A stretch of DNA of 64,000 nucleotides from Octopus sinensis (taxonomy: Eukaryota). Made by a program: the position numbers and the translations under genes. How positions within the stretch are numbered: position 1 is the stretch's first letter; every line of letters begins with the position of its first letter. The DNA is taken from positions 124,001 to 188,000 of the forward strand of contig NW_021835992.1 of assembly GCF_006345805.1 (NCBI RefSeq). The letters are read 5' to 3'. This document shows, piece after piece, positions 7,901-64,000 of this stretch. Under the pieces are notes generated by a model that did no database searches, was not told the DNA's origin, and saw only the letters and a list, made by a program, of their open reading frames with translations.

Positions 7901-8749
7901 GGCATTGGATGTGCTGCAGTTGTTTGAACAGAGTGGACTGTCGGACTTGGCCAGTCTGGTGAGGAAACAACTCAGTCAGTCACTCCTCATCCCCGAGGAC
8001 ACTCAGCCATCGGAGGTTGTGTGAATCAGTAGACAGTTTGTGAGTGTGATTGAGCATATCACACTTCACTCAGGTTGTTAAGGAGTTGAATGGGTGTTCT
8101 CCACTGAGAATGCAGAGTATTGTGGATGGGGAGACGTGCAATCCCTTCGAATCAGTATCCCCTCTGTGTGTTTAGATATCCCTCCACACTGCCCTCAGTG
8201 GACATGTCCCCCTGTCCCTTTCAGTGATGTCACACTTGTCCTCATTTGTTCTATTCGAGCACATGAAGCATTTCTCCACGTATTTTCTCTTCATCATTTA
8301 GAAATACAAATCAAATTTTATTAAACGACTTGATTTTTATGGATATGAATTCCACAATAATTTAGAACGTGATACCATTTCTCTAATTGAGGTAATTAAT
8401 AAAATATTCAAAATTAGAGTTCTTGTGGGGCATCATCTGTGTCCTCTATTAAAGAGATATTCAAATGCTTAGACACATCCTTTTCTCAGAAATTCAACTC
8501 TTGGTTAAACGTGGACACTTGTCCGTTTATTCCGTATGTCATTTCGGTTGTTGACTGTTCATAATTATAGCGCGGGAATTGGACAAACACCGACCAAGTG
8601 TCAGTAAGCATGTCCAATTTACCCGAGCCACTTTTATTTTACACTAAATCAGTATTAAATATAGTTCATTGATTTTTATTTAAATGAATATAAAACTCGG
8701 GAAATTGAATTTGTTTTAGATTATGGATATATAGAATTGGAGATATCAA

Positions 8750-12138: not shown

Positions 12139-13823
12139 ATGTGTGTCTTGATGGACATTGAATCAAGCAAATGCAACATGATGGGAATTAATGACACAAA
12201 AGCAGGAATGGAAGGACTGGACCGTGACAAAATAAACGAAATTATTATGGAAGCCTCGCGGGGGTCAATCAACCAACAGGAGAGAGAACAGTCCATACAA
12301 GAACGAGTTAATAAACTAACTTAACCGAGGAAATGATTCAAAAAGGCACCAATTCGGCAGATTTGGTCATCCAGAAAATCAAGGAAAATGCAGACTTATC
12401 TCGCACATTTCTCCACATCGACCTGGACTCATTTTTTGCGTCAGTGGAATTGCTGGACCGTCCTGATTTGGCCGACAAGCCAGTGGGGAGTACATCAATG
12501 TTGGCCACGTCCAATTACATTGCAAGAAGGTTTGGTGTGCGTGCTGGGATGGCTGGATTCATTGGACGCAGACTTTGTCCCGATTTGGTCATCATTCCCT
12601 CCAATCACTCCAAATATACTCAAATTAGTCATCGAATTAGAACTATTATCGCCACCTATGACAGGGACTTTCATGCGGGCAGTCTGGACGAGGCTCTTCT
12701 CTCACTCGACTCCCATCTGCAAGCCCGTCTACAATCAACTCCCCAAGATCGCACATTTCTGGAAGCCACTCTCAATGCAGGCGGCTGTTCGTGTCACCTT
12801 CCTATGAATAAACTGACAAGTCAGTCTCTCCATGCTCAAACAATGACTTTGGTGGATTCCACGACGTGTCAGATTTGTTCGCTTGTCATCGAAGGGGACC
12901 GAATTTGGAGGACATTTGGCACAGGCGTGGAGGATGTGGCCCAAGAACTTCGTTTCCGGATCAAACAACACACTCGGCTGACAGGCTCAGTGGGAGTAGC
13001 CCACAATTCAATGCTGGCCAAAATATGCAGTGAAATAAATAAACCGAACGGGCAGTATATTTTGGACAAGTCAAGCATTTCCTCAATTGGAGAATTCATG
13101 GCTGAAATGCCAGTTTTGAAAGTGCCTGGAATTGGGAAAGTGACGACTGTCCTTCTCAATGCGATTGGAGTTTGGACATGTGGGGATATTCTCAGTCAGA
13201 GAGGACTACTGACTTGTCTGTTCAAGTCCGTGGAATATTTTCTAAGTGCGGCCATTGGCCTGACCAAGTGTCGCCTAAATATAAGTCAGCAAAAGTCGAT
13301 TAGTGTTGAGCGGACATTTCCCTCGACTGGTAGTCTGAATTATCTTGTATCCAAATGTGGATATCTCGCCTGTATTCTACACGAGGAATTGATTAAGGAA
13401 GATTTCGAAACACGGGGATTGTCCATCAAACTCAAGACTGACAAATTCAAAATATCGACTCATTCGCTTCTAATTCACTCCTACACTCAAAATCTATCAG
13501 TAATAAGTACTGCGTGTATTGGACTTGTCAAAAGACAGTTGTCGTCTTCTCGATTTGCTGGAAGGTCTTTTCGATTGTTGGGAATTCGTGCCTATCGATT
13601 AAGACCTGCAACTTCTCAGAATTATATTGACAGATTTACTGTGGTTGGATGTGTCAATACCTGTTGTTGTGCATGCTGTGGTTCTGCTAAAAGGCAAAAT
13701 ATAAAAACTCAGATGCAGCCGCCAATCAAAAATCAGAAGAAAAAAAGTAATAAAAAGCAAAAACGGGATAAGCACACCTCCAAAATTACTGACTATTTTT
13801 TAAAGAATAAACATTTTGTGTAA
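12139..13823 (+). CDS. POLK: DNA polymerase kappa (Y-family); frame break near 12320, possibly a pseudogene
   Basis: MGINDTKAGMEGLDRDKINEIIMEAS N-clasp, HIDLDSFFASVE, STSMLATSNYIARRFGVRAGM, SLDEA, NKPNGQY, KVPGIGKVT, KSISVERTF, RLLGIR. Confidence 0.88.
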
Positions 13824-36017: not shown

Positions 36018-37086
36018 GGTACTTTTCTATTTCATGAATCACGAAAATAGGCACTAAATTAATTAATGAAAATTTATTTGAATATTAGAGGAAAAATTAA
36101 AAAAATGAACTATGCCGATTTTGTAAATATTATTATAAATTTTTTTAAATAAAATTTTGAATTTTTTAATCGGTTGTGTGAATGGACGGTCACGTTGGGA
36201 TGAGAAAATACGCAAAATTGAAGGACTACTTTTAGGTACGTGGCTCGAAGGCACGACAGTGTCCTTAGAATCTTGTATTCGTTTTATTTATATGTGGAGC
36301 TTCGACAGACACATTTTATGGTGTCGGCGTCAACTGGAATGGAATGGCCAAACGATATGTAATTGGTCTCACTCGCTGCGGGAGGTATGTGCTGCATATT
36401 TAGCAAATCGTCCGAACACACTGATTGGTATTATATTATTAGATTGCATAGGTGGAATTGAAAATGTCGTAAAAGTTGACGAAAGTATGTTTTCGAAAAG
36501 AAAAAATAATGCGGGACGGATTCTCCCTCAACAATGGGTGTTTGGGGGAATCTGTCGTGGAACAAAAGACTGTTTCCTGGAGATGGTACCAGATCGCTCT
36601 AAAAGAACGTTAACCGCAGCGATACAGCGAAATATCGCACCGGGTTCAGTGATACACTCTGACAAATGGAAGGGTAATTGTAATTACTTTATTCTTGTTA
36701 ATAGGTTATTCAACCCCAGATCTAAATGCTCTTGCTTATATGCACCTTACAGTAAATCACAAGTTTATTATAATTCATTTATAAATTTGCAGACGAAATT
36801 TTGTAGACCCGGAGACCGGTGCACATACCCAGACTGTTGAGAGGTTCGTGTAGCAAAAATTATATACAAAAATATAGAATGTGGGGGAACGCAAAATGGC
36901 GCAATAAGAGACAAAGAGGAACCGCACGCCACTATATGGGTGAATACTTTGCAGGTATTAAATATTCTGATTTAATTTGTAGAATTTTTATGGAGAAGGC
37001 AAGTGAGCCATTTGGACAACGCATTCGACGAATTGTTAGACGCAATCGTGCAACTATTTTCGTGATTCATGAAATAGAAAAGTACC
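36018..37086 (+). mobile_element. Merlin (IS1595/ISXO2-like) DNA transposon with intron-containing transposase
   Basis: 33-bp perfect TIR GGTACTTTTCTATTTCATGAATCACGAAAATAG (36018-36050 / 37054-37086); T-run+C TSD (7 of 8 nt match); VDES..WVFGG..SDKWKGY..TQTVERMW after removing 5 introns. Confidence 0.92.
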
Positions 37087-39699: not shown

Positions 39700-40982
39700 T
39701 AATCAGGGGGATACAAGCGCTGCCAGCTGGACATATCAAGGGTCGATGCAGGCGAAGTTTCCGAAAGGGAGATCCTGGCAGCGATCTCCCGAAGTAAGAA
39801 CACCGCGGCGGGGCTAGATCGGATCCCTATGTCCATCTTCAAAAAGGCCCCGCCGTTGTTGATCACGGCCTTACAGGTTTTGTTTAGCGGGAGCTTGCGA
39901 CTTGGGATGATTCCTTCCAGGTGGAAAGTGGCTGAGGTAATCCTCATTGGAAAACCTGGGAAGCCTCATGATGTCCCCGGGGGATATAGGCCCATTTCCT
40001 TGCTTCCCGCTATATCTAAAATCCTAGAAAGGATCATGCACCAAAGGCTCCTGGAGGAGCTGATGGTGGCTGACGCCCTCCCGGAGTTCCAATGGGGCTT
40101 CAGGGAGGGTCGTTCATGTGGAGACTGCTTGTGGAAGGTGTCTTCCGAAATGAAGAACGCCCTCCAGAAAAGTGAGTTTGGTATGTTAGTTAGTCTTGAC
40201 ATAGAAAAGGCCTTCGACTCGGTGTGGCACGACGGCCTGCGAAGTTCCCTCGCCACGTGTGGGGTTTCTCCGTGTCTAAGGCGCTGGCTGTCGGGGTTCC
40301 TCGAATCTCGCGGTCAGGTCGTGCGACACCAGGGGGTCTTTTCTAAAGTCGCAACAGTCCTTCGCGGGGTCCCTCAGGGTTCTGTGCTGAGTCCCACACT
40401 GTTTAATATCTTTATGGCCTCTGCGCCTATGCCAGTCAATGCTCGTACTGAAATGGTGATCTATGCAGACGACATTATCCTCTGGGATCAGTCGATGAAA
40501 CCAGAGTGTGCGTGTCGTAGGCTACAGGTTGCTGTGGATGAACTTGTAAACTGGTGTGGGAGTAGGGGTCTAAAGATGTGTGCGGACAAGTGCAGTGTCC
40601 TTAAAGTCTGTAAAAGGACGAGGGGTTACACTAATTTTATCCCTAGGTTATCGCTGGACGGGTCAGCGATCGCTGTAGTTGATCGGACGACTTACTTGGG
40701 CGTGGTCTTCAAGCAGTCAGGTAAGTTCGATGATCACATTGCACGTACTAAAATGCGTGCAATGCAGCGATTAAGCGCGTTGCGTGCTTTCCACTTGAGG
40801 AGAGGTGCCTGGTTCCGTGTGTTCAACGCCATGGTGTTACCCGTGTTAACCTATGGCGTGCACGCTTGGCACTTCTGCGAGGACAGGGAGAAGTACGTTG
40901 ACGCGCTTAAGAAAGTAAGAAGACGAGCCATCCGGCTAGCCTATGGCTTAGGATGGCGTGATGAGCTCTCCAACGCCCAGGA
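39700..40982 (+). mobile_element. Non-LTR RT fragment (I/Jockey/R1 group), truncated at both ends, fused to 28S rDNA
   Basis: WKVAEVILIGKPGK..YRPISLL, QWGFREGRS, LDIEKAFDSVWH, GVPQGSVLSP, YADD, YLGV; ORF stop falls in rDNA sequence. Confidence 0.85.
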
Positions 40983-42240
40983 ATAGGGGCGAAATACTAA
41001 TCGAGCCATCTAGTACAGGGGTCGGCAAAAGCAGGCTCGCGAGCCTTTGAAGGCTCTTTAACTCTTTCGGTAGGCTCTTTCAATTTTTAACTATTTTTTT
41101 TTATAAATGATTTCAATTTTTAACTATTTTTTTTGTTTTGTTAATAACAAAAAATCTTTGCACGTTTAACATTAATTTTTTGTGGTACATCGATATATGC
41201 CTAGCAAGAAAAAAATTAATAAAAAATCGATAATGAGCGACATTTTCAATCAAAATGGACTGAAACTTTTGCATGTACGTCTAATTCAGAACAACTACCG
41301 AAATGTCTCATTTGCCAGGAAACTTTGAATCAAAATAAAAAGTCAAATTTAGAGAGACACTTTAACACAAAACACTCAAATTTCGCCAAAAAATATCCAA
41401 TTGGTGATTCCCGAAAGAAAACTGTGGAAGAACTTACAAAGAATAATCAGTTCGAGAATTCTGCTTTTAAATGTTGGTCTGACAATGCCAGGACTGCAAA
41501 TATTGCCAGTTTTTTATTAAGCCACGAGATCGCAAAAGCCACGAGATCGCCGATGGGGAATTGGTCCCAAATCGCAAAAAGGGAAACAAAATATTTTACA
41601 TTTTCCTAAATTACGCTAATATTTGAAAGAAAATGATCGAACTATAAATAAAACTTATTTTAAAAATGTTCTTTTGTATATGAAGGAATCTTTCAATGAC
41701 AGGTTAAAAATGAATGTTTAAATATAAAAAGGTTTAAGGATTTTAGAAAAGAAAAAGCAACACTATCGTTTGTTATAAACCCTCTACGTGCTAAAGTCAG
41801 CAATTTAAATTAATGCGTCTAATTAATTTAATTTTCTAAAATGAATTTTTAATTATTTTTTAATTAATGTCTATTTAATTTTATGAATTTAAATTTTTGA
41901 CAAGTGGTAAAAGGTGGCTCTTCAATTTTTCGAAATTTCCAAAAATGTTCAAAATTGGCTCTTCTCCAAAAGTATTTGCCGACCCCTGATCTAGTAGCTG
42001 GTTCTCTCCGAAATTTCTCTCAGGATAGCTGGTGTTCGTAAAAAGTTTCATATGTTAAAGCGAATGATTAGAGATCTGTGCTCAGATTGGGTGCATACTA
42101 TTCTCAAACTTTAAACACGTGAGATATGTGGCTCACTTGATTGGAGGCACATATAGAATTAGAGTACCAAGTGGGCCAATTATGGTAATCATGACTGGCG
42201 CTGTGGGATGAACCAAACGTCTAGTTAAGGTGCCGATCGA
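40983..42240 (+). rRNA. 28S (LSU) rRNA fragment / pseudogene interrupted by a hAT
   Basis: Rejoined sequence ATAGGGGCGAAA..CTAATCGAGCCATCTAGTAGCTGGTT..CAGGATAGCTGG..TAAAGCGAATGATTAGAG..CTATTCTCAAACTTTAAA..CTGGCGCTGTGGGATGAACC..GTTAAGGTGCC is conserved LSU core. Confidence 0.9.
41016..41988 (+). mobile_element. Non-autonomous hAT (Buster/SPIN-like), 973 bp
   Basis: TIR CAGGGGTCGGCAAA; 8-bp TSD ATCTAGTA (41008-41015 / 41989-41996); BED-like CLICQE..LERHFNTKH remnant. Confidence 0.95.
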
Positions 42241-44631
42241 CCCCGAACGGGCCTTACACTGCAAACTTTCCCATTAAGGAAGCACGGTATTACTGAATTA
42301 GTAGGAAGACGACTGAGGAAGTGGTCTTACATTGTCGCTGCGGAACAGCTCCCACCTAATAACTTATCACAAAGAATATTAATTAAAATTTAACGAAGTT
42401 GAAAAGCACAAAGAAATTTTGCATGATGTTATAAACAATAAAAATACGACGATCAAAAAAGTAATGAAAAAATTAATGAATTAGAAATTATTATTATTTA
42501 AGCCAAACAAAATCACCGTCTTAACCATTAACTAACACGTTCAGGTGATTCCGACACTTCTCAACAGTCGAGCCATCTTTTCACGATGTTCAGACCGTGA
42601 CCCCACACACTTTCTGTATGTACGGTGAATGGTTTGTGGTCCATTTCCACGATCCCCCCCATTTGCCTCTACGAGAGACTCCAGTGTTATATGGACAATT
42701 TCCCTATCGGTATGGTCCTTCAGTAGGTTGATAGATCTTTCTTGGATTTTTTCGATTTTTAGCCGGTTCGTTGCCGCCAGGTTACAGCCCCAAGCAGCAC
42801 ATGCATAGCCTATTGTTGGCTCGATATACTGCTTGTAAAGGGTCTCTACCCCTGGCGGATAAGTTCTCCCACAGTTCCAAAGGAAGGCTTTTACAAAATT
42901 GATCTTCTTTATACAGGTTGATACGATCGATTCTACGTGAGGTGAAAAACAGAGGAAAGTATCAAGCGTTACTCCCAATATCTTCTGTGTTTTCTTTTGT
43001 GGTATTGGGACTCCATTCAGCGTGACTTCAATAGTTTTCGTCCCCATCTTCCTATTTTTCGTGAATAGAGTGACTGCTGACTTTTCGGAACATGCATGTA
43101 GTCTGTTTTCATATAGCCATCCATATAAGTCGTCCAGTATTCTTTGTAGTCTTTCCTTCGCGTATTCGACATTTACATCCCTAGTTTAATATTGGCAGGA
43201 TTTTTGATAGTTTCCATAAGTTCGGTATAGAGTTCGTGATTAATGACGTGTTATAGATCGTGGTTAAAGCATTTATTGAAACAGGGCCCAAGTGTTTTAG
43301 TAGAATAAGTGGAATTCCATCCGGTCCACATGAGTTTGTTTTCTTCTGATTCGAGATTGTTTCAGACACCTCTTCAGGAAGAAAATAAGTCGTCGGGGGC
43401 CTTTTGGATGGCTTTGATTTTAATCTTGGCTGTGAGTTCATTTTTTATAAGGAATATGACTAATCTTGACACAGTGTTTCATAAAATTGTTTAGATTGAG
43501 CTGGTATGTTTCTGTTTTACGCTCGTCAGGATTCTTCAAGCGTCTCAACATCGTCCACATGGTCGAAATAGAGGCTTGTTTATTCATAGCTCTAGAGATT
43601 CGGCTGAGCTTCTTCCTTTGGACTTGGTTGGTATTATTCGTAATAAGCATGTTTAGAGCCCTGATTCGATCGATGATTCCTTTGGGTCGATACTTTCTTT
43701 TCTTGAGGCTGATTCTTTCTCTAATTAGTTTTTTCGTTCTTGAATCATATTTTGAGCTCCCACTTCTTATACATGCTCTTCTGATAATCAAATTTCTTGA
43801 ACCTATGATAGTTTTGTTGAAGCTTTCCACTGCTCTGTCAAAGGAAGAAAAATTCTCAGGGTGGAAGTTCTGGAGTCTTGAATCAACGTAATTTGCGAAA
43901 GCATTCCAATCTGCGTTTTCGTAATCATAGAAATAAGTTGGTTTCAGTATGGCATGTGGAGAACAGTTCATTCTCATTGAGTGGTGGTCACTTCGGAGAT
44001 CATAGCGGACCGACCACTTGATGATAGGGGAAAGCCGAGGCGAGCAAATTGATAGATCTGGCGATGTCCTCGTGTCCTTGGAGTTGTAGGGTGTCCGAGT
44101 GTTCTTTTTCGGGTTGTTAAGGATTATTAACTTCTGCAATTGCGATACCAAAAGGTTTCCTCTGGCATCGGCAGTCTGATATGGGAATCAAGCGGGATGC
44201 TTCGCGTTCAGGTCTCCGCATAAGAGTAGGTTATCCAATTTATCAAGGCTTGACAGGTCAAAACGATAACCCTTCTTGCATGAACCTGGGGGAGGTACGT
44301 AGACATTGGCGATTTCAAGTCTTCCGTAGGAGGTCATAAGTGAGATTCCAATTATTTCGGAGTTGGAGTCCTTCCTTAGGCTTGCATACGGTAAGGGATT
44401 CTCAAAATATTTTATTCCTCTTTTTATAAGGGTCAGTAGACCCCCGCCATGGTCAGACTTGCGGTCACATCGTAGTGCATCATATCCAGCAAAAAGAGGA
44501 GTAGGGATCCGTTCCGAAAGTTTCGTCTCTTGGAGAAGACAGACATCTATTCGGTTCTCCTCCAAAAAACTGTCAAGGTCCGCCGTCTTTCCTCGAATCC
44601 CGTCAATATTTAGGCATTGTATTGTTAGCTT

Positions 44632-44655
44632 TGGGCCGGGATTCTGTTCCACGTC
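44632..44655 (-). other. 2A-like ribosomal skipping motif (LLLLTSGDVEQNPGP)
   Basis: DxExNPG/P consensus immediately before the APE domain. Confidence 0.9.
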
Positions 44656-44743
44656 ACCTGAGGTCAACAGCAACAATCGATGGTAAGTGCCAACGTTGAG
44701 AAGATGCCGTGCAGGGGGAAGTCTTCTGGTTGGCGGGGAGCAA

Positions 44744-44811
44744 ATGGTTCTCTTTAGATACCGTTTAGGACTGTATCCGGCGCCACCAGAAAAGGTAAAC
44801 CACATGACGCG
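44744..44811 (-). ncRNA. Candidate HDV-like pseudoknot at the 5' end of LINE A
   Basis: Manual pairing: P1 GCGTC/GGCGC, P2 GTGGTTT/GAACCAT, P3 ACC/GGT, P4 GATAC/GTATC; covaries with LINE B. Confidence 0.45.
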
Positions 44812-47800
44812 CGCTAAATAATTGTATTCACCGTACATACAGAAAGTGTGTGGGGCCACGGTCTGAACATCGTGAAAAGATGGCTCGACTGTTGAGAAGT
44901 GTCGGAATCACCTAAACGTGTTAGTTAATGGTTAAGACGGTGATTTTGTTTGGCTTAAATAATAATAATTAGAAGATTTAGACAAAAAATAAGACAACGA
45001 AAATCGTTAAGTCCCAGCGGCAAGGACGCAGTGTGCGTTGCCCCGAACAATGGCCAGGCCGATGCGCTGGCGGAACCAGAGGCCCTCTCTCGTGTCCTTG
45101 AGCCTCCTCCCGATGGACTGCCCGACCTCTTTGAGGAACGAGTCAGTCTCCTTCCCCGCAGCTCCAGCGGTTTAGATTTAGTTTTAGATATTCCTCAAAG
45201 TTCGTTAAAAACTTTTAGTGTCTCAGAAAAGTTTAAATTGTGGTTTACTTTGCAAACAAAGAACCTTTTCACATCTTCCAAAGTGTTTATGTGGCGATAA
45301 TACAATAAGTTGTGCTTTTTGCTCTATAGTTTAATAGATTTCTATTCTGTTTTTTCACTTGATTTTGATTAATTAATAAATCATTATTTTGTAAAACATT
45401 TTTTTGAAATAATCAGTCAATTTCAAATTTTTCTTATTTCTTAAATCTTTTCCAAGTTGAAATCTAAGCTTATCTTGAATTTTTTTATTATGAAATGTTC
45501 AAATTAGGTCCAAAAAAATAGAGAAGTTAACTAAATTAGATGAGTCGCCGAGCGGATGGACAGGCAATTTCCACGTAGTATCGCGAACGATATCCGCTGA
45601 AAAAGCCAGCTCGTTCTTGAATTTTTTTGCACCTTCTCTTTAAGAAGAAATTTGTAGACACTTTGCAATTTTAATTTTTGTTTCAATAGAAATCTTGGAA
45701 TGCATTACAAAAAGATAAGTATCAAGTGTTCAAAAATAATATGTCTTAAAACAGGGGTGTCAAACTCATTTCGCTTTGAGGGCCGCATTTTGTAACAATT
45801 TCGTTTCGAGGGCCGCATTTATAATAATTTCTCATTAAGGGAATATTGATTCTGATATTTATTATGATAAATAACCAAAATAAGAGAAACTAAATTATTC
45901 AATCATCGCCCCTTAATTTTGGTGAGAGCTGCTTCCATAGGATTGACATCTTTTTTTAGATACAATTTTTGATATGTCAGGCTGAGCTATTCGTGTAGTA
46001 CCGACTTTTATTAAAGAGAATAAATGTTCATCAGTTAGTCCTGTTCTTTGAGCAGTTTTTGTGCTTTTCATAAATGAAAAAAGCTGTTCACACATATATG
46101 TCGAACCAAACATAGCAATGATTCTTGTTGCAAACTTTTTAAAGTTTTTAAACTTTCCAGGAAGATATAAAAAGAAAGCAGGTATTCCAACCTCCAAATA
46201 TTTAGCTTAAAGTATAGAATCTGATTGGATTTCGAATAGTTACATTTGTAAACTTTTATCTGCATTGGAAACATTAAAAGAGAATGGTGATGCGAATAAT
46301 AAAAATTGTTGTTCAAAAGACCAAAAATCATTAAATCTTTCTTGAAATTCCTTTAACAACGATTCTAGTTGTTTTTCATACTGAGAAAAATTCATTACAT
46401 TATGTGCATCAACAGTACTCCTGATCCAAGATTGGCTTTTCATTTCGTCTGTGTTTTGCCATTTCATCTCCATAAATAAAATTATTTCCGATCTCAACAA
46501 ATAAAATCTTTTAACAAATTTGTGAAGTAATAACCAGAGGACTGGAGTATAAAAAGGAATGTCGCTGAACTGATTATTAATATCTGTCAACAGTTTACTA
46601 AACTGCCGGTGGTTGAGGGGATGACCTCTGATATAGTTTACTGTTTTCGTGACCAAACAAATGGTATTTTCCATTTTTAATATCTTTGAGCACAAATATT
46701 GCTGATGAATAATATAATGAAAATGAGCAAATGATGACCCGGGATTTACCTTTTCTATTTCAGCTCGCAATTTAGCGGCAACGGCAGCATGTCGTCCAAC
46801 CATATTCGAAGCACCATCAGTGCATAAACATACAATCTTCTTCAAATCAAACCCATATTTAAAGAGAATTTGTAGTAGTTTTATAATTTCTATAAAAATA
46901 TCTTTACTTGTAAGTATCGTGCATTGGTACCAGTTCGAGAAATTCTTTATAAATATTAAAATCTGAATCACAGGCTCTAAAAAAGATTGCTAATCGTGCA
47001 ATTCCAACGACGTCGACTGTTTCATCGATTGCAATTGAAAAATATTCGAATTTTAACAAATCAGACTTTAATTAGTGTTTCAAATTCAATGCCATTTCAT
47101 TAATGTGTTCGGCAACAGTATTTCTTGTTAATGAAATATCTTTGAACAAGTGGGCGTCGTCTGGACAAATAATATTCGCTGTTTTTACAAGGCATTGCTT
47201 AATGCAGGTGTTCTCAACCGGGGGCGAATCGCCCCCCTAGGGACGAAAATTTTGTAAAGGGGGGCGATAATTTTGTACAGGGGGGCGATAATATATTTAA
47301 TAAAATATTCGAATTTGAAAATAAGAAAACGATCAAATCGTTATTCACAAAGCCAGTACATGATGGTTATTAAACATTTATTTATATGTAGTTGTGGGTG
47401 CGCACATCGCTTCTTATAAAATTGCTGAAATTATTGCGAAAACTTCCAGTTCTCATACTATCGCAGAAAATGTAATAATTCCATCACTGGAAGTAATAAT
47501 ATTGGATGTAATGCATCAAGATGCTTCTAAAATTATTAAAAGTCTACCTCTTACCTCTTAGCAATGATTCGATTCGTCGAAGAATTGATGAAATGGGTGA
47601 CAATGTAAAGGAAATCCTTATTGAAAGACTGAAGCGAAGTAAGTTTTCATTACAACTTGATGAAAGCGTCATTGTAGATAGTAAAGCTGTTTTAATGGGA
47701 TTTGTGAGGTTATTTTCGAAGTTTTAATAAAATTTAGGTATTTCGATAATGAATGTGTATTAAATGAGGATTTATTGTTTGTCGAATTATTGGAAACCTG

Positions 47801-49104: not shown

Positions 49105-52100
49105 AAAACTATATCCCGTTTTAAAACCAATAATAAATTAATAGTTAATCAGAAACTAAGCAGATCTCACTCCAGCTCGCTGATATCCACTCTCCTTCTC
49201 TTGGAAGAAGAGTCTACTTCCAGCTGCCTCTTACTCCCCACTACCACATCTGATTCAACCATTGCATCTTCTTTAGCATTCATTGGGTCGTCTTCATTTT
49301 TGCATGCCATCTCCACATACCGGTTGGAAGCAGAAGCGTATTCTTCACCAGATACCTTCATTCCGTGCTTGTGTTCGATCATCATACTCTCGAGCGTTCT
49401 TTTCAGTACAACGGATTGGATGTATGTCCTCGTTCCTGCTTCAATAGATAGTTTCTTCATATAATTTTTAAAGCATTTCGAGACAACTCCATCCCATGTC
49501 ATAACCACAGGAATTATTTTTACTTGACAGCTATACAGAAGCGAAAGCTCACTTGCCAATAGGTCATACTTGTGACACTTTTCAACCTCCACTTGCTTGA
49601 GGCGATCCTGTGAAGTAATACCCACTTCAATTAGATTTATTTCGTTTCTGACTTTGTCGTGGACAAAGATATCTGGCTTGTTATATTCTACTTTTGTTTC
49701 GGTGAGGATTGTACAATCAACCCTGATTTCAACTTTTCCCGTCGACAGTGTTGACTGAACAGAATGTCCCTTCAATCGTCTTGCTTTTTTGAGTCCATAC
49801 ATTCGGCACAAGTTAAGGTGAATACACTTCACAACTTCGTTGTGTCTCCGGAGATAATCACTGTTGAGCATTTTACCACACTGAGTAGCCATGTGGTCAA
49901 CAGTTTTCTTGCTTTTCTTACAATGATTGCATAATGAGTCAGCGGATGTAAAGAACAAGTTTCGATCTTGCAGAAGACAATACAATGCTTCACTTCGTGG
50001 CCCATTATTTCCATTAGATAGCCATTCTGAGGATGCAGGTAAATCAACATTAGGTTCATCCACACATTTGAAAAGCACAGAATGTAGTGCTTTAGAACTA
50101 ATTTTCTTTTGTAAATATTGTATCTGACTGGACTTTAGAGACTCCATAGTAATACTCTTCTTATCAATAATTGCATATTTGGAGGATAGAAATCCTGCGA
50201 TCATAGCCAAATGCCATTTATTCATTTTAATTACACGCAGAATCCCCGCCCTCCGTAAGCATATAGTTGACATATTTTCCAGACTCGTAAGGAACTGAAA
50301 GAGCATTAGTTCACTTTTGAAAGCAACTGATGAAAGCCCTCTTCCAAGAGCCTTCCGGTTTAAATACAGTCTCTCTTTATTTGCAGGTTTGAGATGTAAT
50401 CTGAGCGACGTAAGCAATTGCCGTATTTGTCTGTCAATATCATCAAATTCAGAAGGTTCAATATTGATTAGCCCAATATAATAATTATATAGTGACAATG
50501 CATATTCATTTATAGCACGAAACAGATTCACAGAGTTGAGTTTTGTTTTCGATAGCATAGTTATCCTCTTCTTAACATTCTCAAAGATAGAGTCCATAAC
50601 TCTATTCTTAAGAACATTGCTTCCACCATCTTCAAGTACACCCAAATACCGATATCCATTGATTCCGTCAATAGTCTTACAACATGATAATGATTCCAAA
50701 TTAGACGCTGATTTTTCTGAATTCATCTCCAAACCAACAATTTTAAAAAATCCGTTAACAGCTTCCATCATTTTGAGTAAAGTGTCTTGTTTGAGAGCAA
50801 ATATTTTTAGATCGTCAATAAATAGCAAATGATTAGTAGAATATGTTAACATATTGGGATCTTCCTGGTTAATTTCAAGTTTTGGAAACACGGAATTAAG
50901 GATCCTGCTTAGAGGATCTAATACCATAACAAATAGTAAAGGAGACAATGAGTCTCCCTGTAAAATTCCTCGGTTTAACTTCACTGATCCAATTCTTCTA
51001 CCTTCCATATGCAGCTTTACTGCCCACTTCTTAACTACGCTCTTCACAAAGTTTACGATCCAAAGCGGGATTCCAGAACAATCCAAAACGTGAAACAAAA
51101 AATCATGATCAACTGAGTCATATGCTTTCTTCACATCGACCCAAGCAGAATAAAGGCCATTCCCGTACTCCTTGTTCAAACATTGGTTAATGAGAGCTTG
51201 CTCCTTGGCGCCTTGACAATACTTCCTCGTTCCAAGTTGGTTGTCTGAAATTAGGCCAAATGCCTCGACAAAATCAGCCAGTTTAACATTAACACATTTG
51301 GTGACAAGTTTATACAATGTCGGCATACACGTTATAGGACGTAAGTCCTTCGGGGTCTCACAATCATCTTTTTTAGGAATCAAATATGTTATTCCAGTGT
51401 AAAACCAACTTTCAGGCATGTACTCTCCATTAATTATTCGGGTTATCTCGTGACACAGAAATCCATGTAATGATTCCATCTTCTTAATGAAAAAGTTATA
51501 TATCCCATCACATCCACATGCCTTCCAGTCAGGAAGATACTTAATAACATTTCCAAAAAACTCTTCCGTAAACTCTGGAAGCATATGTTCAGCACAAGTA
51601 GTTCGTTTTCCAACAACGTCATAAGATTGAGGCCTCCCATTTCTCTCGCTCCAGACTTTTTGCCAAAAAGAGACACATTCTTCATCATCAAATCCATACA
51701 GCGTCACTTCCTCTTTCTTTGTTAAATCTCGATAGAATCTTTTTCGATTTAATTCAAAGCACTGATTATCCTTACGAAATTGCTTCCTTGAATTATGAAC
51801 TTCTATTTTCTTATTGTTAATCCTAATCAGGTCTTGCAATAATATCTGAATCCTCGACAGCTCACCTTTCTTAGTTTTCTTATACCCATAGCGACAGAGA
51901 ACATCCATTACCTTTTGCTTTTCAGATGGAGGTAGTGTTTGATTGGAATGGGACTTAACAATTTCCAATTCTGCAGATAATTTTGAAATTTTCTTTTCAA
52001 TATTTTCTACCCATGTGCTCTGTGCTTTGTCTCTCATGGTTAGAGATAAATACGCACATTGAGCAGCATATAGAATATCAGAAATGCTATTGATATCATT

Positions 52101-52733
52101 AGGATGATTATCTTTCGTAATATAATATATCGCCGAATTCAATCCTGTCAATATATCAGTTTTCAAATATTTATTTTGAATTTTTGGAGTTGGTTTACGT
52201 GAATCCCTTGGAATCGATTCAATATTCTTAATTTGTATATTCAACTCTTCTAGACACTTTCTAAAAGTGGAAATTTCTGAGCTCTCAAGAAATTGCTTCT
52301 GATGGCAATTGCTTCCATAATTATTATCCACTCTCATTGGTTTAACCATTCCTTTGAGTTGACTGAGACTTGCACTCTTCGAGAATTTTGAATTAAACTT
52401 CTCACGGATAAGGTTCCATCCACCTCTTGGTATCCTCCCAATTCTTTGCTTCGTGGCATAAACAATCTGAGGCACCCACTCAGCTTCAGAAACACAAATA
52501 GCATCATCGATAATGGCCAAAAGGGAATGCAAGTTAGTTGGGATAGTAGGATTCCCAGCAATTGGATTGTCATGAATACTAGTCCTTGTGCTGTTATCCA
52601 GCCCCAGAGACGACACTCCTGCACTTGTTATGTTATTTTTATCCTTTTTCGCAGGAAGGCCCCTAGGATTCGATTTCCTCATATCATTAGGAACGGACAT
52701 GCACAACACCACAACAACTATTCTATCGCTTTT
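49105..52733 (-). mobile_element. Apparently intact R4/Dong-clade non-LTR retrotransposon, nest level 4
   Basis: 10-bp TSD AAAGAATCAA (49095-49104 / 52734-52743); removing it restores the hAT frame LIKRINKSKCRISIQLDESTD. Confidence 0.92.
49167..52712 (-). CDS. RT plus CCHC plus restriction-like endonuclease polyprotein (1181 aa)
   Basis: GAKEQAL, DVKKAYDSV, GILQGDSLSP, NHLLFIDDLK, RLYL..GRGL, CNHCKK..HMATQC, RRHN, KPD..IEVG..KYD; first ATG at 52700. Confidence 0.93.
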   Translation of the reverse strand: MVLCMSVPNDMRKSNPRGLPAKKDKNNITSAGVSSLGLDNSTRTSIHDNPIAGNPTIPTNLHSLLAIIDDAICVSEAEWVPQIVYATKQRIGRIPRGGWNLIREKFNSKFSKSASLSQLKGMVKPMRVDNNYGSNCHQKQFLESSEISTFRKCLEELNIQIKNIESIPRDSRKPTPKIQNKYLKTDILTGLNSAIYYITKDNHPNDINSISDILYAAQCAYLSLTMRDKAQSTWVENIEKKISKLSAELEIVKSHSNQTLPPSEKQKVMDVLCRYGYKKTKKGELSRIQILLQDLIRINNKKIEVHNSRKQFRKDNQCFELNRKRFYRDLTKKEEVTLYGFDDEECVSFWQKVWSERNGRPQSYDVVGKRTTCAEHMLPEFTEEFFGNVIKYLPDWKACGCDGIYNFFIKKMESLHGFLCHEITRIINGEYMPESWFYTGITYLIPKKDDCETPKDLRPITCMPTLYKLVTKCVNVKLADFVEAFGLISDNQLGTRKYCQGAKEQALINQCLNKEYGNGLYSAWVDVKKAYDSVDHDFLFHVLDCSGIPLWIVNFVKSVVKKWAVKLHMEGRRIGSVKLNRGILQGDSLSPLLFVMVLDPLSRILNSVFPKLEINQEDPNMLTYSTNHLLFIDDLKIFALKQDTLLKMMEAVNGFFKIVGLEMNSEKSASNLESLSCCKTIDGINGYRYLGVLEDGGSNVLKNRVMDSIFENVKKRITMLSKTKLNSVNLFRAINEYALSLYNYYIGLINIEPSEFDDIDRQIRQLLTSLRLHLKPANKERLYLNRKALGRGLSSVAFKSELMLFQFLTSLENMSTICLRRAGILRVIKMNKWHLAMIAGFLSSKYAIIDKKSITMESLKSSQIQYLQKKISSKALHSVLFKCVDEPNVDLPASSEWLSNGNNGPRSEALYCLLQDRNLFFTSADSLCNHCKKSKKTVDHMATQCGKMLNSDYLRRHNEVVKCIHLNLCRMYGLKKARRLKGHSVQSTLSTGKVEIRVDCTILTETKVEYNKPDIFVHDKVRNEINLIEVGITSQDRLKQVEVEKCHKYDLLASELSLLYSCQVKIIPVVMTWDGVVSKCFKNYMKKLSIEAGTRTYIQSVVLKRTLESMMIEHKHGMKVSGEEYASASNRYVEMACKNEDDPMNAKEDAMVESDVVVGSKRQLEVDSSSKRRRVDISELE

Positions 52734-59437: not shown

Positions 59438-61364
59438 TCAACTACCATGAAGATCTTTAAGCCTACTGATCTCATCCGCAGTGATCAGCCTGAATAAGGG
59501 AACAGCCTCGCCAAGTTGATGTCCTTTTCTCAAAAGAGGACGGAAATGAGTGGGGGCACACAAAGTGGAAATATCATCGGGGAGGTTGAGTTGACGAGCC
59601 AAACTGGCTGCTGACTGGGGAATGAAGGGAAAGATGAGATAAGCCAACAAACAGGCCAAATTGCACATGAGTGATGTACAGTTATATGCCTCACTCCTAC
59701 TCAATTATTGGCAATCAGTAGACTTGGTTGAACTGGTCTTTACTTTAACCCACGGCTGTTGTGACTGGATAAAAGCATTGCCGAGACGGGAAATGGACAG
59801 GACATCGTAAATGGAAGCCACAAACCTGATAATAGAGACACACATACTTGCAATTGTTCATATTAGTGTGATAACTCTCCACCAAAGGACCAATCTGAGC
59901 TAAAAGTTCAGCCATCTCCTCTGCGACCACCACACTGCCCACAACCGAGTCAAAGAACTTGTTGCAAAACACAATAGCCCTACACATGTTCAAAACTAGG
60001 GACCGGTTGATAAAATTGCCAAGATTGTTGACCAAATGACTGTTAATACACGTCAACATATCATCCCAGTGGAATGTGGAGTCCTAATGTTACAAAAGTG
60101 GTAAAACATGTCCTTCGGGGCGATTGATGAGGAGGTAGAATCTCCAATAATCGGAAGGAATCCCCGAATTTTTTATATCCAAGCCAAAAACTCCGATTCC
60201 CCGTGACTTGGAAAACTTGGTGGTCTCGTAGTTTAAATATTCAGTGGCACTAATGCGAGACACGAGCGTGTAGTCCTCTCCTGTGCCCAGAAGGGAGGAA
60301 GGGAAGACCACCGAGTGGAAAGGCACGTTATCTTTAGCCATGAAATTGGTCAGTTGGACATGTGCTGGATTCTTCCACCACAATTGCCAATCAGGACAGT
60401 AATTGGCTGTGATCGAAATGTAGCCGATTGGGGCGTCAAACCAAACGTAAAAAACTTTGTCTGTGAAGCCTTCTAAGGGGATGGGAGTCCCCCATGTGAG
60501 GTCTCGGCTTATACAACGACTTTTGAGTCCTTCCTTTATCCAGGCGGCCGAGATGGCGACTGCGTTGGCACTCCACAGCCCTTTGGAGGTGGCCATCCAC
60601 TCTTCTAGTTGTGGTTGTAACTAAAAATTAGAAAAATGACAAACTGAGGACAAATCTAGAAATAAGTGATTAGAACTGCGGATTATTGGACTGGCACTAC
60701 AATTCTTGCATTTGGGGGATATCAGTTCAGTGGCCTTGATTAGTCGGCCACATGAATCACATTGGTCCCCTCGAGCGTCATTATATTGACAGTTCGGACA
60801 CTGTCCCTCGACATATCGATCAGCAAGGAACATGTTGCATGTTGTGCAGTACAGTTGATCGACCCACTGGGAGGAAATATAGCCATTCTGATTGAGTTGT
60901 GAGAATATTTGTTGAGTAATTCTAAAATGGATAAAAGCACTGTACTCTGTTTGCAAGGGAGTGGTTGTCCTTCCGAAAATGTCAAAACTGATGTCAATCC
61001 AGTCGTACACTTCTGAGTGGAGTTTGTGGTATTTTTCACATATTTGGGAGGGGGAGAGTCCTTCCTGACGAGCCTTGGTCTCGGTGGCTGTTCCGTACTC
61101 GTCTGTGCCACAAATAAAGAGAGTGGGGTAGTCACTCATGCGGCAATATCTTGGATGTGGATTTTGGTCTACCTTGCGTACATATCAGCACTGAGGACAC
61201 ACCCCACGATGTTGCCGAGGTGGGGAATGTTGTTGACGTAGGGAAGGGCACTGCATATTAATTTGTTGGGTGTGTCTGGCTGGGGAAGGCTGCAGTGCTT
61301 ATACACGTCTATACATTGGCTTTTCTCTAATAGTTCTCTTTTTGTAAAATATTTGCTCCAACAT
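59438..61364 (-). CDS. MARS1: Cytosolic methionyl-tRNA synthetase (catalytic core only)
   Basis: [14 protein letters not shown] (HIGH), CGTDEYGT, Zn knuckles, [16 protein letters not shown] (KMSKS), NNLGNFINR; several 24-25 nt introns. Confidence 0.95.
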
Positions 61365-62042
61365 CGCCCACACGTGCAGTAATTATAACAATTTTTTATT
61401 ATATATTAAAACATCTACTTTCTACAATTGGCGGCCATGTAAATGCAGGGAATCTTATTAGACCATTATTAAACATTTAGTTGGTGTCCTTGTATGAGCG
61501 TATGGATCGTTTAGGATAGTCAACTTATTGAGTACGGAAAGGATATATTCGCCACGAATGTCGGCCGGTTGAGACCGGAGCCAGAGCGGATGCTTGGCAT
61601 TTAGGTCGCCGCATAGCAGCAAGTCCTTCAGTCCGCCGAGTTTCAATAAGTTGGGTGTGTATTTTGAGATAAAAGAGGTCGTCGAGCTTTGCGGTGGGAC
61701 ATATACATTGCATAATGTAAAATGTCTTGAGGGTGAGAGAGGAACTTCTATGGAGATTTGTTCAAGGATAGGATCGTCTTGGCACAGGGAGGAAATGAAT
61801 GTTGTAACGTCGGTGAACACAAGCCCATCCTTGACAATTGTCAATAGTCCTCCACCAAGACATCTCGTCCGGTCCTTTCGCAGTACACTGTAGCCAGGGA
61901 ACCGAGGTGTTGGGGATGACGCGGAGAGTTTAGACTCCTGGATGAGGGCAATGTCCACTTTTAATCGGGATAGAAGGGAGCGTAGCTCCAGGACCTTGCT
62001 TCGTACTCCATTGATATTCAGTTGTAGGATAGTCAGAGAATC

Positions 62043-62066
62043 GGGCCCCGGATTCAGTTCCACGTC
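62043..62066 (-). other. 2A-like motif (FLHLAGDVELNPGP)
   Basis: DxExNPG/P consensus immediately before APE (LTILQLNING). Confidence 0.9.
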
Positions 62067-62144
62067 GCCAGCCAGATGTAGGAAAGAGAAAGGGAAGTTG
62101 GAAGGCAACCCCTCCCAAAATCGTGAAGGGGGGGAGAAGGTAGA

Positions 62145-62210
62145 ACGGTTCTTTTTCATGCAGAATATGCACTGGGCGCCACCACAACAACAGGTGAACC
62201 GCATGCCGCC
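62145..62210 (-). ncRNA. Candidate HDV-like pseudoknot at the 5' end of LINE B
   Basis: P1 GGCGGC/GGCGCC (one mismatch), P2 GCGGTTC/GAACCGT, P3 ACC/GGT, P4 TGCA/TGCA; no obvious catalytic C in J4/2. Confidence 0.4.
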
Positions 62211-64000
62211 ACGTAAATTAATTCTTTAATCACCACGGACCGTACTATCAAGACTATATAACGACTCCATCAACTTACGTACGATACCTAATATATGGAA
62301 AAACTCCCTAATTACGCCAATCCTAAAGCCTGGGAAACCAAAGGATGCCCCCTCTTCATACCGCCCAATCTCAATAACTTGTATCTTATCGAAAGTACTG
62401 GAAAAGCTCGTATTAATGCGAATCTCTCCTGTCCTACAACTGCCAGAATTCCAGCACGGTTTTAGACCAGACCGTTCCACAACGACCCACTTGTGTTCTG
62501 TCTCCCAGTTTATCACTGAGGGTTTTAACATGGGAACACACCTACGGACGGCCTTAGTATCTATTGATATACAAAAGGCTTTTGATTCTGTCCCGAGGAA
62601 ACTCCTAACGCGGAAGATATTTGATTCGAACTTACATCCGAACATCAAACTGTGGTTGGAAAATTTCTTAACTGGCCGTCGCGGAAGGGTCCGTATCGAC
62701 AATACTACTTCAAGATCAAGACTACTGCCCAATGGTGTCCCACAAGGCTCCCCTTTATCTCCTCTCCTTTTTAACCTATTTCTACATGACCTACCCACTA
62801 CTAATGACCCAGACATAATGTTCTTATCCTATGCGGACGACCTGATTATCGCTGCAAGAGATAAATCTCCTTCTGTGGCTGTCGCAATGGTCCAGTCACA
62901 CCTCAACCGTGTATGTGATTGGCTATCTGCAAACATGTTGTGTGTGTCTGCATCCAAATCCCAATTCACCCTCTTTACTACTGACAGAAGATTCAAGAAT
63001 GGGCTGGAACTATTCATTGGAGACAAACCTATTCCCTCTTCGCGTACCCAGAAGATCCTTGGCGTGGTTTTCGACTCCTTAATGACGTTCTCAAGTCACG
63101 TAGAGGAGGCCCTAGCTAAAGGTCTGCGGAAGTGGAACGTCTTGAAAGCTCTGTTAAAGAAGAGTCCCCTCCCCCTGAAAGATTGTGTCAGCAAAGTCTA
63201 CCAACAAGTGATTGCCCCGACGGTTGAGTATGCCTGCTCAGCCTGGAGGTTTGCTATTGCTTGTTCGAAAGCGGAACGTTTGAACTCACTCAGAAGGAAG
63301 ATTATGCTCCACACTGACACCTCAGTTGGCAGTCTTGCTTCCGAGGAGGCGACGCAGAAGAATGGACAGGGTTTCCTACGTTTCTGCAAGGAACTGGGAA
63401 ACCCACTCAAGGAAAAGGTGGCACATGCAGAGGAATTTCGGTCGGTTATAAAGAAATGCACTCCAATTGAGTTCCTCTGCAGAAGGAAGAGAAGGCTTTT
63501 CCGGATTACGGTCGGGTCATCAGAAGATCATGTAAGGAAAGTACGGCTGTGGTTGGAGGCAGGGATCACCTAATTAGTTAGTTCTGACCTATCTTTCTCG
63601 GTGATCTTGGAGTTAATAAATAAATAATAAATAAATAAACATTTAGTCGTACGTAATCTCGTCCCTCTGCCGATCCTTTGCTTAGCTGAATCAGTTCGGT
63701 TGAACAATTTGGGCGACAGGAATGGTTGGGATACCAAGCCAGTCCTCCACAAGACGAGGTATCAATCACTTGTTAGTCACTCCACCGAAACATGTATATT
63801 CCAGGATTCTACAGTTGACGAATCATTCGCCTTGTAGGCCTTCTCTTTTAGTGGGCCACCTCATTCCGAATGATCTGCCGATATAGTCCACAATCACTGT
63901 TCTCTTCTACATGTAATGTCCTGCAAACAACCCCAGTCTCTCAATTTTCGACCTTCGCAACAACACGTGTCCCCTCTAAAACAGGAGTTGTCGTTATTGG

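Follow-up and report, generated by a model that had tools for sequence, protein, structure and literature searches.

Twin priming has been proposed for the long interspersed element (LINE) L1 and, in the accounts given in PMC12016303 and PMC2912911, is found in about 20% of L1 insertions. As these two sources summarise the process from Ostertag and Kazazian (2001), both nicks of the target prime, and the two complementary DNAs (cDNAs), which run in opposite orientation, meet mid-way and are joined there by their 3′ ends, with a single target-site duplication (TSD) around the whole. In the classical form outlined there, the second primer is internal on the same RNA, the inverted upstream segment is tailless and the overlap is about 12 bp. 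For human L1, opposite-orientation two-template insertions have also been described, in which both DNA ends are extended from different templates and then ligated (PMC11702581, section 7). Long-read work on induced L1 expression has recovered insertions that hold sequence from two transcripts, and a comparative genomic study of L1 chimeras put antisense Alu/L1 and tRNA/L1 insertions down to the same process (bioRxiv 10.1101/2025.02.02.635956). Here we describe a LINE insertion of the octopus Octopus sinensis that has two 3′ ends facing outward within one flanking repeat. It lies at 42479–44974 of a 64,000-nucleotide stretch of contig VCDQ01002782.1 (about 124–188 kb, with the insertion at about 166.5–169.0 kb), hereafter the window.

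The octopus insertion resembles L1 twin priming, as those accounts give it, in that both nicks would have primed and cDNAs of opposite orientation meet mid-way inside a single TSD. Unlike in the classical form, the inverted piece here is the 3′ terminus of the element with its own (TAA)4 tail, and 145 nucleotides (nt) are present twice. With the two-template L1 insertions it shares opposite ends that each appear extended by reverse transcriptase (RT) and ligated with microhomology or untemplated bases, and the hallmarks of one target. In those cases, however, the machinery is that of human L1 and the RNAs are usually of two different kinds, whereas in the octopus both pieces belong to one subfamily of a LINE other than L1 and a germline assembly holds the copy as fixed. 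An earlier note on this DNA had held that inverted terminal copies were unknown for APE-type LINEs, which was overstated given the reported human L1 cases (PMC11702581; 10.1101/2025.02.02.635956). A limited literature search turned up no homotypic double-tailed copy described for any LINE other than L1. The structure is most likely a rare variant of twin priming and not a new kind of element. Penelope-like elements likewise come as retroelement copies bounded by inverted copies of their own end. They carry a GIY-YIG endonuclease and a different RT, whereas the octopus element has an APE-type endonuclease and its paralogs are without any terminal repeat. Assignment to the Penelope-like elements was rejected on the endonuclease, since APE was the only such domain found and GIY-YIG was absent.

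The composite is made up of the following parts, the tails and the flanking repeat being read directly from the sequence and the long element being delimited by BLAST, translation and Pfam.

42479–42486, no strand: left copy of the TSD, AATTAGAA, abutting the tail of the long element
42487–42499, minus strand: tail of the long element, A(AAT)4, which reads as ATT repeats on the plus strand
42487–44818, minus strand: long element, a full-length, internally deleted 2A-APE-RT LINE with a single open reading frame (ORF) and with frameshifts and stops
44819–44825, no strand: filler TAATTGT, 7 nt, at the head-to-head junction
44826–44969, plus strand: short arm, a 5′-truncated copy holding the last 131 nt of the element and a 13-nt tail
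44957–44969, plus strand: tail of the short arm, A(AAT)4
44967–44974, no strand: right copy of the TSD, AATTAGAA, of which 44967–44969 double as the last tail unit

A repeat scan paired 42486–42630 with 44826–44970 as an inverted repeat of 145 nt, identical at 143 of 145 positions, with 2195 nt between the arms. When 42479–44974 was compared with the whole window by BLAST, this pair of arms was the sole match (98.6% over 145 nt), and no further copies of the family were found there. Direct reading placed the two mismatches at 42542/44914 and 42600/44856. The same 13-nt tail, A(AAT)4, stands on both outer ends, with the (TAA)4 repeats pointing outward, and the short arm contains the complete 3′ hairpin predicted for the element. 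Thus the arms, their length and identity, both mismatch positions, the outward tails and the flanking repeat all proved to be, to the base, as the earlier note had them. At the inner junction, ...CGCGCTAAA-TAATTGT-ATTCACCG..., the two pieces lie in opposite orientation with their 5′ ends meeting in the middle and one TSD outside. The filler TAATTGT matched neither the element nor the 5′ flanks of its paralogs, nor anything nearby; it looks as bases left by untemplated addition or by end joining usually do.

We compared the insertion with other copies of the family, of which six in all were sampled. Three of them (L001, L004 and L005) are full-length at about 2.87 kb, and a fourth (L002) is truncated at both ends and uninformative. 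BLAST of the long element against L001 gave two blocks, at 95.9% and 93.3% identity. All four full-length copies, that of the window included, begin with the same 5′ terminus, (T)TTAGCGCGCGTC followed by ATG, so the long element does reach the 5′ end of the family, and homology with the three paralogs puts this end at 44818 rather than at the approximate 44811 proposed before. At the other end, the window copy, L001, L004 and L005 all finish in GGCTTAAA(TAA)n. The inverted arm is absent from L001, L004 and L005 (3/3 of the other full-length copies), so it is a property of this insertion rather than of the family. An arm that is part of the family architecture was accordingly rejected for the copies that could be reached, as these three share the 5′ terminus without it. 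No second copy with these inverted termini was found in the window or at the five paralog loci.

The paralog L005 has an arrangement of its own. At O. sinensis VCDQ01001570.1, 4988–8214, a full-length copy that is 99% identical to L001 and a 353-bp copy stand 10 bases apart. The 353-bp copy comes second, in the same orientation; it is 5′-truncated and belongs to the subfamily of the window copy. Each of the two ends in its own tail, and ATAATTG may form a 7-bp repeat on either side of them. A chimera made by template switching, or two insertions side by side, could account for the arrangement. Downstream of the second tail by about 100 bp, at 8307–8370, lies a diverged (77%) inverted fragment of the family 3′ region.

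The coding content of the long element was examined by three-frame translation. The minus strand of 42487–44818 forms a single reading frame that a few stops and frameshifts interrupt; along it an ATG, a 2A motif, the APE domain, a linker, the start of RT, the C-terminal region of RT and a stop codon follow one another. The landmarks, apart from the 3′ untranslated region (UTR), are these.

44808–44818, minus strand: 5′ terminus and very short 5′ UTR, TTTAGCGCGCGTC before the ATG, common to L001, L004 and L005, with an analogous terminus in the sister family
44188–44807, minus strand: first open stretch, with its ATG at 44805–44807, encoding 2A and APE; a 205-aa protein in RefSeq
44634–44657, minus strand: 2A ribosome-skipping motif DVEQNPGP, directly upstream of the APE domain in the translation
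43183–43184, minus strand: junction of a 532-bp internal deletion with 2-nt filler, where the RT core is gone (L001 7625–8156)

The APE domain was recognised as Pfam Exo_endo_phos (E = 1.1e-7) on 44188–44859 of the minus strand. RT lies downstream of the endonuclease in the same ORF; it is complete in L001, homologs carry PF00078, and its core is what the window copy has lost. With 532 bp of the RT core deleted, the window copy cannot be autonomous. The stop codon, at 42541–42543, is only about 40 nt ahead of the tail. The closest protein was the product of O. sinensis LOC115229065 (92% identity), and the nearest named relatives, which are distant, were reverse transcriptases of BS and X-element type. 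The element is therefore an APE-type LINE with a single 2A-APE-RT ORF. LINEs with one ORF and a 2A motif are described from the clades Rex1, L2, L2A, Crack, CR1 and Ingi, molluscs included (PMC3708506), and the octopus element is like them in having GDVExNPGP just before APE, one ORF and a mollusc host. The single ORF, very short 3′ UTR and trinucleotide-repeat tail are RTE-like features. Assignment to RTE was not adopted, as the described RTE-2_OV has a zinc finger and 600-nt UTRs and 2A-bearing LINEs have been reported in other clades. Both this family and a sister LINE family of the window, described below, have an N-terminal 2A motif (DVEQNPGP at 44634–44657 and DVELNPGP at about 62047–62070, both on the minus strand) and a 5′ UTR of only about 13 nt.

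Folding of the last 75 nt predicted a hairpin just before the tail.

42500–42560, minus strand: 3′ UTR with the predicted hairpin GGAAUCACC / GGUGAUUUU, spanning the stop codon at 42541–42543

The same stem was predicted in L001 (8787–8832) and again in the sister family (63563–63607), where one pair differs in a compensatory manner, from A-U to G-C. The z-scores, from −1.4 to −2.2, are individually weak or modest. The hairpin may serve these LINEs as their 3′ recognition element, and its predicted fold suggests a fit with LINEs whose RT recognises its own 3′ end. The presence of the whole predicted hairpin and the tail in the short arm suggests, in the same way, that synthesis of the second cDNA began at the true 3′ end of an RNA.

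We consider it likely that the composite arose when, during a single integration, reverse transcription was primed at both target nicks, each time on the 3′ end of an RNA. This is the most economical reading and fits every testable feature. Whereas the anatomy, the family identity, the canonical 5′ terminus and the lack of the arm in other copies are observed, one event, priming on both strands and the order of the steps are inferred. During retrotransposition of a 2A-APE-RT LINE in the O. sinensis germline, both staggered nicks would have served as primers. The plus-strand 3′-OH, ...AATTAGAA, would have been extended on element RNA from the (TAA)n tail to the 5′ terminus, giving the 2.3-kb long part; in the assembly the plus strand does run from ...AATTAGAA-3′ into the antisense of the tail and then through the whole element to its 5′ terminus. 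The minus-strand 3′-OH, ...TTCTA(ATT), would have been extended from the tail of an element RNA as well, for only 145 nt; here the minus strand runs from ...TTCTA(ATT)-3′ into the antisense of the tail and of 131 nt of the 3′ end. This second primer would have begun at an RNA 3′ end, on a second RNA or on the same RNA reused, instead of internally. Both cDNAs would then have been joined by their 3′ ends mid-way via the 7 untemplated bases and the gaps filled, leaving a 5–8 bp TSD around the entire composite. On a single-event history the site before insertion would read ...AATGAATTAGAAGATTTAG... with one AATTAGAA. The minus-strand primer can pair with the tail via ATT and the plus-strand primer cannot; since only the former pairs, the sequence hints that the short arm may be the regular first-strand event. 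Snap-back copying of the 5′ end of the cDNA itself was set aside, because it would need an exact stop at the boundary of cDNA and target and would leave a hairpin, not a duplex.

Several observations weigh against priming from both nicks in one event or limit what can be drawn from the flanks. The TSD is short, at 5–8 bp, with three of its eight bases (AAT) ambiguous with the tail, and the unambiguous part of the right copy is TAGAA at 44970–44974. In favour of one event, such a flanking repeat is improbable by coincidence: k-mers recur at that spacing in this window, with a tolerance of ±3 nt, at an empirical rate of 2.6e-4 for 8-mers in general, 4.7e-4 for 8-mers that are AT-rich and 1e-2 for 5-mers. 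In the paralog survey, L001, L004 and L005 had no clear abutting TSD of at least 8 nt. Insertions without a TSD thus occur in the family, so the TSD argument rests on 5–8 bases, and the fact that inspection found no separate TSD around the long part or the short part alone is weak evidence against two separate insertions. The earlier proposal of double-nick priming within one TSD is partly supported. Six copies are too few to gauge how often the structure recurs. A paralogous empty site was not found when the joined flanks were compared with the rest of the window and two loci, where the one match (74%) was irrelevant. No orthologous locus was on record when sought via the neighbouring ORFs at 46240–46971, 39829–40986 and 49167–52700. 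Metagenome scans for the empty site and for the family 5′ terminus found nothing. Within 10 kb the annotation holds ORFs of transposable elements only, leaving no host gene as an anchor for orthology.

We then considered how many RNAs were copied. Alignment of the arms with L001 and L002 revealed that the arms share CGTG versus CACG, TTTTG versus TTCTG and a 2-nt gap, and these diagnostic states show that both come from the same subfamily. The arms differ by T>C at 44856 and by G>A at 44914, the latter turning the stop codon TGA into TAA. Both changes occur in the short arm alone, and the long arm keeps the family state at the two positions. Being private to one arm, they could be mutations after insertion or RT errors, and the earlier deduction of two RNAs from these differences is weak. 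Two copying events are needed in any case, because 145 nt of the RNA is represented twice. Two RNAs, or one RNA that was released and reused, would both explain the second copy.

An alternative history comprises two independent insertions, of which either the long or the short copy came first, a second copy of the same subfamily having landed head-to-head within 7 bp of the 5′ end of the first; in that case the outer AATTAGAA repeat would be fortuitous, wholly or in combination with the TSD of one of the two events. The genome is very rich in transposable elements, TSD-less events exist, as other full-length copies without clear TSDs attest, and L005 offers two copies of different subfamilies directly adjoining. 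Against this, the second event would have had to strike no more than a few bases from the 5′ end of the copy already there, an exactly abutting repeat of 5–8 bp would also be needed (p = 2.6e-4 to 1e-2), and neither part has a TSD of its own, so we regard two insertions as unlikely. The composite might instead have pre-existed in a source copy and been copied as a unit, either by segmental duplication or by retrotransposition of a transcript whose start coincided exactly with the short arm's outer tail. With only six family copies sampled such a master could have been missed, but the arm is absent in 3/3 other full-length copies, a transcript start at precisely the first base of the inverted tail would be needed for the TSD to abut, and no other copy of the flanks was found in the rest of the window or at two loci. 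Copying of a ready-made composite is, on these grounds, quite improbable.

Rearrangement of DNA after an ordinary insertion, for example an inverted duplication or repair synthesis that placed a copy of the 3′-most 145 bp at the 5′ end, has in its favour that break repair yields inverted duplications and that the filler resembles end joining. The copied piece must, however, begin exactly at the end of the tail, and its point of insertion must fall precisely between the 5′ terminus of the element and the right TSD, a coincidence that makes this origin very improbable. We give slightly less weight still to an assembly artefact, that is, a chimeric read or a misjoin at the repeated 145-bp segment. 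The region is repeat-rich and the contigs come from noisy long reads, by the method as cited; but a misjoin would create neither matching flanking repeats nor a clean junction at the true 5′ terminus. Furthermore, the assembly is PacBio-based according to the citation in 10.1101/2023.05.16.540928, which places the 2.5-kb structure within the length of a typical PacBio read. Hardly credible is a unit that moved like a DNA transposon by its 145-bp terminal inverted repeats (TIRs), with an 8-bp TSD as in hAT. The TSD is indeed 8 bp and transposase-like ORFs lie nearby (36157–36840, DDE_Tnp_IS1595), yet the termini are LINE tails, the interior is a LINE from 5′ terminus to tail, and no other copy with these ends was found in the window or at the paralog loci.

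A second insertion in the window shows how another octopus LINE of this type integrated. At 61470–63647 lies a copy of the sister 2A-APE-RT LINE with a classical twin-priming 5′ inversion and a 12-bp TSD.

61470–61481 and 63636–63647: TSD TAAACATTTAGT, flanking the whole sister-family insertion
61482 to about 62219, minus strand: inverted 5′ part, with APE and the ATG at 62202–62204, the 5′ terminus of the element lying in the middle
About 62220–63635, plus strand: forward RT part, ending in a (TAAA/TAA)n tail

About 750 bp of the element is missing between the two parts. This inversion indicates that priming from the second nick occurs with these octopus elements.

If double priming in a single event is the true history, the locus would preserve a naturally occurring integration intermediate of a non-L1 LINE with recognition of its own 3′ hairpin. 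It would follow that reverse transcription from the second target nick can begin at an RNA 3′ end as well as at random internal sites, which bears on the number of RNAs and RT subunits at the integration site and on second-strand resolution outside mammals. That tail-to-tail double priming is recurrent for LINEs recognising their own 3′ hairpin, and not a one-off, with two RNAs or RT subunits and a symmetric start, is a doubtful extension that we put forward tentatively. Were it so, LINE copies with long terminal inverted repeats would arise regularly, and these might give rise to loci of hairpin RNA or small RNA and to foldback-prone sites in the genomes of cephalopods. At this locus, the near-perfect inverted repeat of 145 bp, with its arms 2.2 kb apart, could form a hairpin in any read-through transcript, on which RNA editing or small-RNA production might plausibly act. 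Octopus is known for heavy RNA editing. A single locus serves as an illustrative case and not as the discovery of a principle.

The window holds further features away from the two LINE insertions. On the plus strand, an intronless ORF of 496 aa at 12333–13823, annotated as a gene, has domains of DNA polymerase kappa/DinB type (IMS, IMS_C) and looks like a retrocopy. Two adjoining open stretches on the minus strand at 60090–61139, beside the twin-primed sister LINE, encode much of the catalytic domain of methionyl-tRNA synthetase without introns and are probably a processed pseudogene. An uninterrupted minus-strand ORF of 1181 aa at 49167–52712, annotated as a 1101-aa protein, contains a reverse transcriptase domain and may be an intact retroelement of another family.

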